Assembly: GCF_000143415.4 (NCBI RefSeq)
Contig: NW_003314582.1
Location: 1 to 11,094, forward strand
Reading direction: 5' to 3'
DNA from: Selaginella moellendorffii
Lineage: Eukaryota; Plantae; Lycopodiophyta
Length of the DNA stretch: 11,094 nt
Shown here one piece after another: positions 2,020-9,566 of the stretch. Position numbers and translations under genes: made by a program. A model generated the notes under the pieces. That model searched no databases. It had not been told where the DNA came from and saw only the letters and a program-made list of their open reading frames with translations. Each line of letters begins with the position of its first letter. Position 1 is the first letter of the stretch.

Positions 2020-2958
2020 TTAGCAAGGGTGCCGGTCGGAAATAAATTCTTCCGACAACATGTTTGTGGTTGGCTGGATTGCGCGTTGCATATGGTGCCT
2101 TTCCATTGAATGCGGTGTGCCCAGTCAAAGTCCGAAGAATGATGAGGTTGTCGTAGTCCTGAACCTTTCATCCGGGAAGGTTGGTCTGCAAATTCAATAT
2201 ATGCTTCATCCAGAACGACGAGAAGTGGTAGAGCAAGAACGGCCATGAGATCCTCATCGGTTATTAAACTGAAAAAACAGGAGCAAAAACATATGCTTGA
2301 CATACAAGATTTTCTTACTTACCTTGAAGTTACCTCCCATCTGGATTGTTTGGCGATGTCAAAAGATCATCTTTGGAGAGTGCTCCTTCAGCACGATACC
2401 AGGAATTAGTAAAGAACAGACCAAAGAAAATTGAATCACAAACAAGACCTTTGATGACGCTTACAGCGGCATCAAACGCATACATTGTCAAAGTGGGAGG
2501 ACAATCCACAATCTTGTCACCACCTTCCAATGTACAACTAAAGAGATGAAGAACCATCTCGTGAAGAGCAAAAGAAGAAAAAAGAAAAAACACGCTAGGA
2601 GTTGGTCACTTACCACATGATCAAATCGATGAGCTCGTCGGCACCGCAGCCAGCAAGAATGTAATCCATAGACGGTCCCGAGGCTTCTGAAAGAGCTGCT
2701 CGAAGCCGCCTGCTCTCTGGATCTAAATGTTTGGAAAGTCCATTCCTCCCAAGGATCAAACAAACAAGGAATCTACATACTTCTGGTGGAGGCCCGTAGA
2801 GGTTCTCGTTGGCATCCAGCTTCACGATCTCTTTTGGAGACCTTCCAAGCTTGGCCATTCACAGGAGAGGAGAATTCGGGACACAAGAGGAAAAATCTTA
2901 CCTCCAACGGCTCGATCGTCTTGGAAGGCGCCAAACCCAGCAAGTGCTTCCAGATGAA
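2020..2958 (-). pseudogene. HISN6: rearranged partial duplicate of the HISN6 gene (part of exon 1 to start of exon 7, introns retained)
   Basis: 2127-2958 is colinear and highly similar to ~8535-9488, with about 10 small deletions. 2020-2111 corresponds to 8426-8535 in inverted orientation. It lacks the transit peptide, most of exon 7 and exons 8-9. A 2-bp deletion shifts the frame in exon 6. Confidence 0.93.
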
Positions 2959-3070
2959 GGCTGGATCCAATAATGTATTAAAAAATTCCAATAATTTGCA
3001 GTTTAATATTTAGAAATAGAAACCAAATATTGACAATTTCTTTCAGAATATTCCAAACACACAAAGCAAA

Positions 3071-4382
3071 TTACTCGGTTTTTTGGGGATGAACAATTGA
3101 CGAAGGATACAAGATCTCTTTCGCGCCGGGAACGTCCATGATCAGCTTGGCAGCAGGAACTTGAGTGCCAGGAGCCGGAGACACGAAGAGCAATCGATAC
3201 GTCCACTCGATGAGCTCAGGAGCAAAGATTCTGTAGAGCAGCGTCACTCCATACCAGGAAGGCACACGGACGTAGCGAGCGCCACGGACTGTCCCCGAGA
3301 AGATTGCCTTGGCACACTCTTCGGCATAAGTGACTGGAACAGGTCCCACGGTGACCTGCGAGGAAAGGAAGTTGTAGATGTGGAACTAAGTCAGAACTCC
3401 AGTTTGGTTCACTTACGTCTCTCAGGTCAGGCATTGTTACGTGCTCCCCTTCGGCAGAGATAAACTTGCCTCGAGTGATCTCGCTCTCGACCCATCCAGG
3501 GGTTGCTATTGTGATACCAACGCTGTTTCCAACCTCGACACGCAGCGTGTCAAACAGATTCAGCAGCGCAGCTTCGGCGGCCTGGAGTTGTTTGTTAAGC
3601 CTCTTTAAGTAATATATAAGTTGGAACGCAAAGCTTACATTGTAGATGGCCAAGCGTGGCATTGGTAACCAAGCTGATACCGAAGAATTCACCACAACTT
3701 TACCTCCCGAGCGTTTGAGGTGAGGGAGAGCGTAGTAAGTAGGATAAACTGACCCCCAAAATGTGACATCCTAAACCAACAACATTAAGCGACTTAAAAG
3801 CGAAATCCATACTTTACCATTATCGACTGAAAGCTGGACACATCAACAGCCTCCTCGAACAGATAGCTGTGCATGATCCCAGCGTTGTTTACTAGATGAT
3901 CCACTACAGAAAGAAAATTCAGAGCAAAATAGGAAGTTCCCGATACTACAAACTTACAGCGTCCAAACTGATGAACTGTCTCTTCAACAAACCGCTTGCA
4001 TTCTTCCTCGTGCCCGAGATCAGCAGTCACGATTCGAACATCCATAGCACCGATCCTCTGACATTTACCAGCCACATCTCTAAGCAAGCCCTCTTGATTT
4101 CCGACCAGTATCAGCTTAGCTCCATGGGAGGCATACTCATAGCTTAGTTTCTGCACAACTCCAGTAGTGAATTAAAACCATAGAAAAGAAGCAGCTTACC
4201 TCCCCAATTCCCGATGTTGCTCCCGTGACAACCACAACCTTACCTCGGACATTCTCTCTGAAAACGAAGCTTAGAAACCAGTGGCAAGCATTCATAAAAG
4301 TCAGAGGAGGCCATGCGAGCGCTAGGAAGAAGAGTCCCATCGGTGGAACCACCAGGTTAAGAAAAAACTGCACCAAATCCAT
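3071..4382 (-). CDS. HSD: steroleosin / 11-beta-hydroxysteroid dehydrogenase-like short-chain dehydrogenase (HSD family), 347 aa, 6 exons
   Basis: Exons 4382-4200, 4150-3958, 3903-3818, 3770-3639, 3581-3417, 3355-3071, all GT-AG, total 1044 nt. N-terminal hydrophobic anchor with proline knob (NLVVPPMGLFFLALAWPPLTF). SDR motifs TGATSGIG, LDHLVNNAG, FWGSVYPT, NSSVSAWLPMPR and GITIATPGWVESEIT. Confidence 0.93.
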
Positions 4383-4457
4383 CCCTACCTACGGATGAAA
4401 CTACAAAACAGATCGATAGCTTCGACCCCCTCCCGCGTGATCTGACAATCCCTGGTA

Positions 4458-4485
4458 GATATATAATCCTCTCCGCATGCATGCA
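4458..4485 (-). promoter_or_regulatory. RY element (CATGCATGCA) plus TATA-like box upstream of the steroleosin gene
   Basis: CATGCATGCA at 4476-4485. TTATATAT on the minus strand at ~4466-4459, about 80 nt upstream of ATG 4382. Confidence 0.55.
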
Positions 4486-4584
4486 CAATCTAGCATTTGG
4501 ACACCTGTTGAGAATTTCTATCTGCGTCAGGTAGAGAATCAAAAGCGTACCAAAGAGTTTGTCGCTCACAGAAATTGGGTGTTT

Positions 4585-6227
4585 CTAACGATAGTTCGGC
4601 TCCACACCGGCAAAAATCCGATCCAAGTGCCGCTTTAGAGGCTCCTCAGCAAAGATAAATCTCGTGGCATTCTTTGCCAGCTCGAATAAATCGTGTTCCG
4701 ATAGATCTGGAGAATTGTTAGTGAAACATTATTGACATACATCTGACGAGCAGTTACCGAAGCTGGTTGCTGCAATGGCGTACTCAGAGGAGAGGTTGGT
4801 GGAAAATACCCCTCGATCGTCAGTGCAGATGACCAAAGGGTAGTGAGTTTTGTAAAGCCATGCTGATAGATAAAGATCACATGAGAAAATTTAAATGGGG
4901 TGGACATAACAAACCGAAATGGTGGTCACAGATGGATTTCACGCACCCGGTACGAAGGTTTGAAGTGAAACAGACTTCTACCTGCAAAATATAAAAACTT
5001 TAAATGCTCAACAAAAAAATAAAGATGAAGGAGACCGGAATTCGCAGATTGTGCAGCCGTTCCCATTGAGATTCTTGAAGAACACATGCATGTCCTAGTC
5101 TGTCAGGATGAAAGGCCAGCATTTCTTCTACCTCATCTGGATTGTGCACCTGCAGAGTTGATACCGATGAGAATTATAACATAGACATTAGAACAACGTA
5201 CCTCTCCGCAATGCAACGTAACTGGGAGGCCGCACTGCCTAGCATATGTCAATGCAGGCAAGAACGTCTTCCTACAAGGTAATAACAAGTGAGCTAAGAC
5301 TTGAGAAACTAAATCTATACCAGTTTCCGGTGACAGGATTCCCAGAAAGATCTATGCCGACAACCCCGTGGCTTTTCATTTCCAGCGCAAGCTTCACCTA
5401 CAGCTAAGACGTGAATAAAATGAAAGGAAAGAAAAAGGAGACAGCTTACTTAGTTAACAGCTTACAGTTTCAATGGCCTGGTCCGTGGTCTCTCGACGAT
5501 CGATGCTTAATAGAAGCCGTACTTGAATTCCATGAGCATGAAGCTGATGGTTCTCACAAAGAACCAGATTGGCTTTGGTGATTCCCGCAAGAACGGCTTC
5601 GACGTAGGAGCGTTTTGTCATCCCTGTCAACACATTGCTCTGCAAGCTTGACTGAATTAAAAGCTAAAGTTGAAAAGAAGTTATCACAGAGCGTCACAAA
5701 CCTTTGGTGTCGTACGCAGCTCCAGGTAAACAACGTTCTCGGCAGCAAAATCCTCTATCACCTGCGTTTCATGGCTTGAGTTTCTCTTTCCGCTTAAACA
5801 ACGAAAGAAAAAAGAAAGAGGAAAAGATCTTACGGACCTCTTTCGTGATTCGCGTGATAAATGAATGGTCCGTGGTAAGAACGTGAATAACGTCGAAAAG
5901 CTTGAAGCATTCTTGTAGTGATCGGTCTTCTGCAACAGGCACCAAAGAAATGAGCCCAAACAAAAGAGACAAGAGTCTGGAAACCTTTGAGTATGATTTC
6001 CCGGACATTTGGATAAGAAGAGATGGTTCCACGCTGGTCATGCTCTTGAGCCAGCTCCCTACACACCGGAGTTACACATTTCGTCCCAAAAAAAAAGAGA
6101 AATCTCACAGTAGTGTGGAATCCCTGATGCTGCCATTGAGATGCGCGTGGAGCTCAATCTTGGGCAGCCTCTTGCAATACCTCACAAGAATCTCGCGAGC
6201 TCGATGCTGCGCTTGATTGCTAGACAT
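4585..6227 (-). CDS. MAPDA: adenosine deaminase-like protein / N6-methyl-AMP deaminase (ADAL/MAPDA), 357 aa, 11 exons
   Basis: Exons 6227-6109, 6058-5985, 5929-5838, 5761-5702, 5639-5466, 5397-5321, 5271-5202, 5149-5036, 4981-4915, 4862-4758, 4706-4585, all GT-AG, total 1074 nt. Motifs LPKIELHAHLNGS, YLELRTTPK, LLSIDRRE, GIDLSGNP, LHCGE, RLGHAC and CTDDRGVF; Zn ligands and catalytic Glu are intact. Confidence 0.95.
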
Positions 6228-7936: not shown

Positions 7937-9566
7937 TTAAGCAAATGCTTTCAGAGCATTCATGAGAACGTCCGTGTGCTCTGGCTTTCCAACCGAGATT
8001 CGGATGTAGTTCCTGAGCTCCGCGTTATCATAATGGCGAACCATCACTCCCATTTTTGCTAATCCATCCTGCACTTACAATACTGAGCCAAATGCTTTCT
8101 TTTTCATTTTGGAAATACTGTCTACCTTGAGCTCCTTGGCGCTGCGGTTGCCAGAGACGGAACAAAGAATAAAATTGGAGCAGCTTGGATATGGTGACAA
8201 GTATTGCACTGTCTGGAGGAGCTCAAACAGCCTGTCTCTCTCCTGTATCAGAGATCTCTTCACCTCCTGGAGTAAACAAGCTTGAGAATCGTAAAAACAG
8301 ATAAAACTAGAGCATGGAGATCATACCTCGAGGTAAGAGGAATTTTTTAGAGCAGCACAGGCAGCTACTTCTGCCGCGGCGGACACGTTATACGGTTGTT
8401 TTGCTCTCCATAAGTAATGGATGAGATTCAATGGAAAGGCACCATATCCAACGCGCAATCCAGCCAGTCCTGAAAAACCAGAAACATTTTGTCGGGAGAT
8501 TTTATTTCCGGGTTACTTACCGGCACGCTTGCTAAAAGTCCGAAGAATGATGAGGTTGTCGTAGTCCTGAACCCATTTCATCCGGGAAGGTTGGTCTGCA
8601 AATTCAATATATGCTTCATCTAGAACAACGAGAAGTGGTAGAGCAAGAACGGCCATGAGATCCTCATCGGTTATTAAACTGAAAAAAAAAAGAGCCAAAA
8701 CATGTACTTGACATACAAGATTTTCTTACTTACCTCCCATCTGGATTGTTTGGCGATGTCAAAAAGATCAGCTTTGGAGAGTGCTTCTTCACTGCCTGCA
8801 CGATACCAGGAACATCGATGCGGAAGTCATGAAACCTCGGAACTATAGAAGCTTTAGCAAAGAACAGACTAAAGAAACTTGAATCGCAAACAAGACCTTT
8901 GATGACGCTTGCTCCGTTGACAGCGGCATCAAACGCATACATTGTGAAAGTGGGAGGACAATCCACAATCTTGTCACCAACTTCCAATGTACAACTAAAG
9001 AGATGAAGAACCATCTCGTGAAGAGCAAAAGGAAAAGAAAAAAAAAAAAAACGCAAGGAGTCGGTCACTTACCGCATGATCAAATCGATGAGCTCGTCGG
9101 CACCGCAGCCAGCAAGAATGTAATCCATAGACAGTCCCGAGTCTTCTGAAAGAGCTGCTCGAAGCCGCCTGCTCTCTGGATCTGGATAAATGTTTGGAAA
9201 GTCCATTCCTCCCAAGGATTCCATCACCTGTGTCAAACAAACAAGGACTAGAAAAAGAAGAAGAGGGAAAAAATTCCAAAGCTCTCAAACCTACATACTT
9301 CTGGTGGAGGCCCGTAGAGGTTCTCGTTGGCATCCAGCTTCACGATCTCTTTTGGAGACCTTCCAAGCTTGGCAGACAGCACCTACATTCACAGGAGAGG
9401 AGAATTCGGGACACAAGAGGAAGAATCATACCTCGAACGGCTCGATCGGCTTGTAAGGCGCCAAATCCAGCAAGTGCTTCCGGATGAAACCGCATCCCGC
9501 CGCTGGTGTGGCCGGCGCCATCGACAATGGGATGCTTGGCCCGCTGCAAGCGATTCTCGCCAGCAT
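7937..9566 (-). CDS. HISN6: histidinol-phosphate aminotransferase (HisC, PLP-dependent class II aminotransferase), 384 aa, 9 exons
   Basis: Exons 9566-9432, 9382-9299, 9227-9073, 8994-8897, 8842-8734, 8678-8521, 8469-8327, 8266-8126, 8068-7937, all GT-AG, total 1155 nt. Motifs [48 protein letters not shown] (PLP Lys), KQPYNV and IRISVG. An in-frame TAA 9 nt upstream fixes the start. Confidence 0.97.

Follow-up and report, generated by a model that had tools for sequence, protein, structure and literature searches.

Plant lipid droplets carry three major proteins, one of which is steroleosin; its native substrates and true role are unknown (PMC13247531, a 2026 review). The defining features of the steroleosin family are a conserved NADPH-binding subdomain and an N-S-Y-K active site, and its member AtHSD1 prefers NADP+ (PMC6914826). 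In the short-chain dehydrogenases/reductases (SDRs), the tetrad Lys binds the nicotinamide ribose, is part of the proton relay and brings down the pKa of the catalytic Tyr (PMC13418739). The existence of SDRs without catalytic residues is a known phenomenon. In petunia benzaldehyde synthase, the beta subunit (PhBS-beta) keeps the Asn, Ser and Tyr of the tetrad, has Leu in place of Lys, and carries Asn instead of Arg in the NADP pocket; this subunit is inactive, yet it is conserved, and the alpha2beta2 enzyme needs it to assemble and to bind substrate. The substitution K182L in the active subunit of the same enzyme abolished activity, and BbsC of BbsCD is cited there as a further inactive-subunit comparison (PMC13418739). 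Here we describe a steroleosin gene of the spikemoss Selaginella moellendorffii that lies on the minus strand of an 11,094-bp stretch of DNA (positions 1 to 11,094 of contig NW_003314582.1, hereafter the window), and in which the catalytic Lys and the Arg pair that contacts the cofactor are both replaced.

Part of this observation is not new, since the key Lys to Glu substitution has been in print since 2012: Umate (PMC5054715) reported K to E in 'SmSlo1' in one sentence, without interpretation or mention of the Arg pair. SmSlo1 is presumably this locus, because it is the only S. moellendorffii steroleosin found here with Glu. A 2023 survey of the hydroxysteroid dehydrogenase (HSD) family (PMC10311447) did not discuss active-site residues, and a paper on sesamin binding by a steroleosin contained nothing on cofactor or catalysis. 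Our literature search returned no paper naming the locus tags of this gene, and none that paired 'steroleosin' with 'pseudoenzyme'.

Active-site and cofactor residues

Relatives were collected with two protein searches. The exhaustive search used exon 6, the C-terminal exon, as query, and its matches included many fragments; the query of the word search was an alignment (A1) that held the six exon pieces as separate rows together with the full-length relatives P0007, P0010 and P0024. The word search returned the public protein P0139 (SELMODRAFT_138761, 347 amino acids), to which the spliced model is identical at every residue, and this protein was the reference sequence for all later analyses. 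Residue counts refer to 192 full-length members (300-420 amino acids, P0139 included) from both searches, that is, to 191 relatives when P0139 is left aside. The alignment sets the changed residues of P0139 under ARR(E), D-x-N-FWG and YNASK of the relatives, and the codons concerned are the following:

3573-3575, minus strand: Glu201 codon, GAA, at the catalytic Lys column, within Y197-N-A-A-E201; the column holds Lys in 178 of 192 sequences, Asn in 5, Ser in 3 and Glu here alone
4091-4102, minus strand: codons of G78-N79-Q80-E81, where relatives read A-R-R-E (NADP 2'-phosphate clamp after beta-2); Arg in 179 and 183 of 192 at the two columns, Asn at the first and Gln at the second only in P0139
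3762-3764, minus strand: Thr157 codon, ACA, at the tetrad Asn column, within DVTFWG, placed by alignment; ACG, also Thr, in a further allele (X6, see below)
3681-3683, minus strand: Ser184 codon, the catalytic Ser, kept; Ser in 183 of 192 at this column
3642-3644, minus strand: Tyr197 codon, the catalytic Tyr, kept, placed by alignment
4203-4226, minus strand: Gly-rich dinucleotide motif T53-G-A-T-S-G-I-G60, kept by alignment, with Ser56 to Thr as the sole change

Compared with the hallmarks of steroleosins, the TGxxxGIG loop is present (TGATSGIG, residues 53-60), the Arg-Arg pair after beta-2 is absent (N79-Q80), and the N-S-Y-K tetrad, or S-(12x)-Y-(3x)-K pattern, retains S184 and Y197 and deviates at E201 and T157. 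The initial annotation had read YNAAE in place of YxxxK at 3575-3573 and GNQE in place of ARR at 4102-4091, with Ser (3683-3681) and Tyr (3644-3642) preserved, and all of these readings hold; Glu201, Asn79 and Gln80 are each found in 0 of 191 relatives. It had also counted the Thr of MDVTFWG (ACA, 3764-3762) as a third lesion of a dismantled active site. The residue is indeed Thr, but it is not a loss specific to this gene: the column reads Asn in 151, Thr in 21 (P0139 included) and Asp in 10 of the 192 sequences, and it switches state 14 times on a tree of 59 family members. The carriers of Thr are the nearest relatives of P0139, namely three paralogues of Diphasiastrum, Cryptomeria, Taxus, several ferns, Sphagnum, Ceratodon and the alga Mesotaenium; every one has the Lys, and Taxus, with Thr-Arg, is the sole carrier without Arg-Arg. 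Therefore, Thr157 is a labile trait of the subclade and not a lineage-specific dismantling, and K201E and RR79-80NQ remain as the gene-specific changes.

An unbiased test of all columns conserved in at least 90% of the 191 relatives (n = 85) led to the same picture. P0139 deviates at 10 of these columns, versus a median of 2; seven of the deviations are conservative (I52V, S56T, A64S, A78G, V106L, I179V and V272F), and the only radical ones in the whole set are R79N, R80Q and K201E. Judged from this alignment, the damage is limited to the 2'-phosphate clamp and the catalytic Lys, and the site is punctured at two points rather than dismantled.

Loss of the catalytic Lys is itself recurrent in the family, with at least five independent events on the 59-row tree. 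A supported clade of Poales reads Y-N-A-[AS]-N throughout and keeps both Arg-Arg and the tetrad Asn (P0193, P0285, P0291, P0299 and P0305, including Typha, Rhynchospora, Zea and Paspalum); this motif matches the K to N change described for rice 'Slo6' by Umate 2012 (PMC5054715). Two fern-like transcripts, P0255 and P0260, carry Met or Gln at the Lys column, and P0028 and P0143 carry Ser. On the other hand, a fern clade formed by P0268 (Ceratopteris), P0269 and P0270 (Adiantum) has Leu-Asp or Pro-His in the place of Arg-Arg and keeps Lys and Asn, a pattern that may reflect a shift of cofactor preference inside the family.

The same S. moellendorffii genome contains a canonical paralogue (P0024/P0174, on a 1.26-Mb scaffold) with YNASK, Arg-Arg and Asn. 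The branch leading to this paralogue is very long (0.95), and its sequence shows 15 deviations at the 85 conserved columns, compared with 10 in the Lys-less gene. Besides the sequences of S. moellendorffii itself, nothing above 59% identity to P0139 was found, and the exon 6 search gave none above 57%. No orthologue from another Selaginella species was present among the full-length matches and the fragments of 190 or more amino acids in the searched collections.

Gene model, transcripts and alleles

The joined exons (183, 193, 86, 132, 165 and 285 nt) comprise 1,044 nt and are predicted to encode 347 amino acids with a single, terminal stop codon; the five introns are of the GT..AG type, measure 47-61 nt each and have phases 0,1,0,0,0. 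In colinear order the exons match the Pfam family adh_short, exons 2-4 being below threshold singly and exons 1, 5 and 6 giving no match; P0139 as a whole has a precomputed match to PF00106 (adh_short), so that the classical SDR domain expected of a steroleosin is recognised. NCBI names P0139 '11-beta-hydroxysteroid dehydrogenase 1B isoform X3' and also 'hypothetical protein SELMODRAFT_138761'. Its 90% cluster also includes P0323 (SELMODRAFT_87233), from the other reference haplotype on a 3.67-Mb scaffold, and P0322, the 365-residue isoform X1, which is 18 residues longer. The gene model was compared with Logan contigs of four runs placed on positions 2900-4600: X1, X15 and X16, which come from three studies, and X6, which is of the DNA type. 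The features are as follows:

3071-4382, minus strand: six-exon steroleosin gene of the S. moellendorffii window
4200-4382, minus strand: coding exon 1 (codons 1-61), with start codon, hydrophobic anchor and Gly-rich loop, from sequence; the 4150/4200 junction is spliced in the X1, X15 and X16 contigs
3958-4150, minus strand: coding exon 2, ending in phase 1; Pfam adh_short positions 17-77, junctions confirmed by contigs
3818-3903, minus strand: coding exon 3, with the LDHLVNNAG motif; sequence, Pfam and contigs
3639-3770, minus strand: coding exon 4, with DVTFWG, Ser184 and Tyr197-Asn198; Pfam adh_short positions 107-149, contig junctions
3417-3581, minus strand: coding exon 5, with AAE and the PGW motif; sequence and contigs
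3071-3355, minus strand: coding exon 6 and stop codon, the family-specific C-terminal part, with 130 relatives in the exhaustive search; contig junction
3904-3957, minus strand: intron 2, 54 nt, stop-free and in frame; retained in the X1 contig and in NCBI isoform X1 (365 amino acids)
3582-3638, minus strand: intron 4, 57 nt, stop-free and in frame, between Y-N and A-A-E; spliced out in all three transcript contigs
4490-4550, minus strand: intron of the 5' untranslated region, 61 nt, with an alternative 46-nt form at about 4503-4548; CT..AC joints in the X1 and X15 contigs

Runs X1, X15 and X16 each gave intron-less contigs of 1.0-1.1 kb that skip exactly 3356-3416, 3582-3638, 3771-3817 and 4151-4199, and which must therefore derive from RNA. 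The X15 and X16 contigs also skip 3904-3957 and the X1 contig is unbroken over 3817-4150, so that all five predicted introns were confirmed by spliced contigs. Retention of intron 2 adds 18 residues just ahead of the NNAG strand. The position of the upstream intron indicates that transcription starts upstream of 4551; two variants of the 5' untranslated region, differing by three substitutions and a 2-nt insertion, occur side by side in the same runs, which is consistent with two expressed alleles. Other ways of joining the sequence around intron 4 were considered as a source of a hidden Lys and were discarded: with the intron retained the protein reads Y-N-V-S-F, with no Lys at Y+4, and an alternative AG acceptor within the intron places a Lys at Y+5, not Y+4, and is used by no contig.

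The letters at 3573-3575 showed no alternative in any of the four runs, and the allele of the second reference haplotype, P0323, differs from P0139 by M15T and I239V only and keeps YNAAE and GNQE. The Lys codons AAA or AAG, whose presence at 3575-3573 in reads or in the other haplotype would have contradicted the initial annotation, do not occur in these contigs and haplotypes, which show only GAA or Glu. Run X6 yielded an unspliced contig of 1,587 nt that keeps GAA and differs from the window at 23 positions, and thus represents a further, third allele. Nine of its differences are exonic, eight of them synonymous (including the ACA to ACG change at Thr157) and one non-synonymous (T317P), and in the 268 nt of introns there are 11 substitutions and two insertions or deletions; accordingly, the introns have diverged by 4.1% and the exons by 0.86%, about five times less. 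With 253 synonymous and 788 non-synonymous sites, the synonymous divergence (dS) is about 0.032, the non-synonymous divergence (dN) about 0.0013 and dN/dS about 0.04; one or fewer non-synonymous changes among nine has a binomial probability of about 1e-4 under neutrality. Contigs labelled as organisms B and C match the window at more than 99% identity and have allele variants in common with X6; they were therefore assigned to the same species and not counted as separate lineages.

Anchor, fold and constraint

The open reading frame, the splice sites and the proline-knob anchor were described as intact in the initial annotation, and the agreement of the 347-residue model with P0139, the introns confirmed by contigs and the conserved Pro columns bear this out. 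The anchor required of a steroleosin, an N-terminal oil-body segment with a proline knob, is present in P0139:

4263-4379, minus strand: anchor segment, residues 2-40, with the proline pairs P13-P14 and P25-P26 (proline knob); conserved Pro columns, hydropathy and AlphaFold

The four Pro columns of this segment are kept in 133-179 of about 181-186 relatives, and the mean Kyte-Doolittle hydropathy of the anchor (about residues 5-41) is 1.34 versus 0.11 over the remaining protein. A model obtained with AlphaFold2 from an alignment of 100 sequences has a mean predicted local distance difference test score (pLDDT) of 96.1 and a predicted template modelling score of 0.92; in this model the Rossmann core is complete and residues 2-40 form a single long helix with pLDDT 93-95. 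The top matches of Foldseek in the PDB, each at probability 1.00 and with template modelling scores by target of 0.75-0.85, were without exception 11beta-HSD1 from human or mouse. A sequence search of the PDB also led to 11beta-HSD1. The identity to plant steroleosins or HSD1 proteins is 45-59%.

In a maximum-likelihood tree of the 59 family members, P0139 groups with HSD1-type sequences of ferns, gymnosperms and angiosperms, although resolution of the deep nodes is weak and Diphasiastrum is placed just on the other side of the midpoint root. Descent from the HSD1 type is indicated by this weakly resolved grouping and by the gene structure, as six exons with phases 0,1,0,0,0 have been reported for plant HSDs (PMC10311447). 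Read from its sequence, the gene is one that encodes an HSD1-type steroleosin, with an 11beta-HSD1-like classical SDR fold on an N-terminal hydrophobic proline-knob helix.

The terminal branch of P0139 in the same tree is 0.46, and its mean distance to three algal sequences is 1.39, versus a median of 1.62 (rank 5 of 56, shortest first). The protein as a whole is not accelerated and is among the slowest-evolving members of its family tree. It is well supported that the fold, the anchor and most of the motifs are held by purifying selection, and that the gene is live and constrained.

Another aspect of the window is a direct repeat next to the steroleosin gene. Positions 2166-2958 and 8576-9488, 6.4-6.5 kb apart and 93-99% identical, contain a piece of an aminotransferase class I/II-like gene. 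In the copy near the steroleosin gene the match ends at 2958/2959, at a distance of 112 bp from the stop codon of that gene. Transcript contigs placed on 2900-2958, with five mismatches, continue into the letters of 9489-9518, from which it follows that the expressed copy is 8576-9518 or beyond; the sequence at 2166-2958 looks like a truncated duplicate.

Possible roles and comparison with known systems

In classical SDRs that prefer NADP, basic residues after beta-2 bind the 2'-phosphate of the cofactor. The replacement of Arg-Arg by Asn-Gln would thus remove the clamp on the 2'-phosphate of NADP(H), and the carboxylate of Glu201 at the Lys site should block the canonical proton relay; together, the changes would eliminate three positive charges and add a negative one around a polyanionic cofactor site. 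On these grounds, P0139 has most likely lost NADP(H)-dependent hydroxysteroid oxidoreduction and the binding of NADP. A tetrad Lys and a cofactor-pocket Arg that are missing from an otherwise intact fold, in a gene that is expressed and under purifying selection (eight synonymous to one non-synonymous allele differences, short path length and spliced transcripts), is what is expected of a non-catalytic SDR. We consider that P0139 is probably, by a modest balance of this evidence, a constrained non-catalytic steroleosin kept for a job that does not depend on catalysis. Such a protein might be a coat or a ligand-binding (sterol-binding) protein on lipid droplets, or it might act as an inactive partner subunit for the canonical paralogue P0024/P0174, a possibility for which PhBS-beta of petunia is a close precedent in plants. 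A Lys-independent role is plausible, since the loss of this residue recurs at least five times in the family.

Several points weigh against this proposal. All other cofactor and catalytic motifs (TGxxxGIG, NNAG, D105, S184, Y197 and PG) are unaltered, and an old dispensability of cofactor binding would be expected to result in drift of these motifs; their integrity together with the slow evolution of the protein suggests that the losses are fairly recent, or that P0139 still binds a dinucleotide, perhaps NAD(H). The searched collections contain no other species of Selaginella by which the changes could be dated. Likewise, the allele comparison rests on nine exonic differences, the contigs are assemblies and not raw reads and are for that reason silent on the level of expression, and the lipid-droplet location of P0139 is presumed from homology.

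A serious alternative, although in our opinion a less likely one, is that P0139 is still an enzyme, which would have changed its preference from NADP(H) to NAD(H), and in which Tyr197, Ser184 and Glu201 would support a modified redox or a non-redox chemistry, as happens in enzymes derived from SDRs and devoid of tetrad residues. The conserved Gly-rich loop, NNAG, D105, Ser184, Tyr197 and PG, together with the strong constraint, fit this possibility; moreover, the fern clade with Leu-Asp or Pro-His instead of the Arg pair keeps its Lys, indicating that changes at the cofactor site occur in active-looking members, and the enzyme that heads the PDB matches by sequence is NAD-dependent and has V-N-D in the aligned position. 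SDRs without tetrad residues have been named as candidates for neofunctionalisation (PMC13418739). Nevertheless, a charge reversal beside the Tyr should raise its pKa instead of lowering it. A preference for NAD usually goes with an acidic residue at the end of beta-2, and P0139 has gained none, E81 being already the family consensus. To our knowledge, no active classical SDR has Glu in place of the catalytic Lys. Nor was any Lys or Arg found near the site that could compensate: among the residues compared with the relatives none is uniquely gained there, and the only unique basic gain is K62, just past the Gly-rich loop. An exchange of positions between Lys and Asn, as in complex SDRs, was looked for in P0139 and was not found.

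The initial annotation had set aside both decay and sequencing error, and the spliced transcripts, the GAA codon in three alleles, the 8:1 excess of synonymous differences, the slow evolution and the confident fold agree with it on both counts. Incipient decay, in which recent inactivating changes would mark a drift toward a pseudogene, could account for the 10 deviating positions among the 85 conserved columns (median 2), and no orthologue of another Selaginella species in the searched collections shows the age of the present state. However, the reading frame is intact and all splice sites are used, the allele differences are mostly synonymous with introns some five times more diverged than exons, the path length is among the shortest of the family, and seven of the ten deviations are conservative swaps (I/V, S/T, A/S/G); furthermore, the three radical codons (79, 80 and 201) require at least four nucleotide changes and so do not represent a single recent mutation. 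For these reasons, we regard decay as very improbable. That an error of assembly or sequencing, or a wrongly spliced model, conceals a transcript encoding Lys is hardly conceivable, for although intron 4 lies in frame directly between Y-N and A-A-E, where another splice could in principle alter the motif, the 3638/3582 junction is used in three transcript contigs from three studies and GAA or Glu is seen in four runs and two reference haplotypes.

An expressed and constrained member of the family that lacks both the Lys and the NADP clamp is a ready-made separation-of-function allele; if P0139 is still on lipid droplets and needed there, the steroleosin family would have a catalysis-independent role. 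The recurrent loss of Lys, in the Poales clade and in ferns, makes this a general question and not an oddity of the spikemoss. A more far-reaching idea, which we hold to be rather improbable, is that steroleosins are selected mainly for a function on lipid droplets that needs no catalysis, either because they would form a structural or ligand-sensing coat or because Lys-less members would act as regulatory partners of active paralogues. It is suggested by the fact that the only Selaginella HSD1-type orthologue found has lost Lys and clamp and yet evolves no faster than canonical relatives, and by the independent loss of Lys on at least four more occasions, including the whole Poales clade. If true, it would explain why no native substrate of a plant HSD has ever been found.

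The closest fold to that of P0139 is mammalian 11beta-HSD1 (PDB 2bel, 1xu7 and 1y5m), which shows 26-29% identity and is also an N-terminally membrane-anchored SDR. The mammalian enzyme has the full tetrad, binds NADP(H) and is found in the lumen of the endoplasmic reticulum; plant steroleosins have a longer C-terminal extension and are located on lipid droplets. With the plant steroleosins or HSD1 proteins, such as sesame Sop2 and AtHSD1 (At5g50600; Lin 2002 and d'Andrea 2007, summarised in PMC6914826), P0139 shares the proline-pair anchor, the 11beta-HSD1-like SDR domain, the six exons with their intron phases and the family-specific C-terminal part; unlike them, it carries Glu for the catalytic Lys and Asn-Gln for Arg-Arg. 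The Lys-less steroleosins of Poales (rice 'Slo6', Zea, Paspalum, Rhynchospora and Typha) resemble P0139 in that the Lys is replaced in an otherwise canonical protein, in their case across a supported clade; however, the replacement is a neutral Asn and not an acidic Glu, Arg-Arg and the tetrad Asn are kept, and the loss is independent. Finally, PhBS-beta is, like P0139, a conserved plant SDR without the tetrad Lys and the cofactor-pocket Arg; unlike P0139, it is a soluble protein of peroxisomes from another SDR family, and its partner is known, whereas for P0139 the paralogue P0024/P0174 is a candidate partner.

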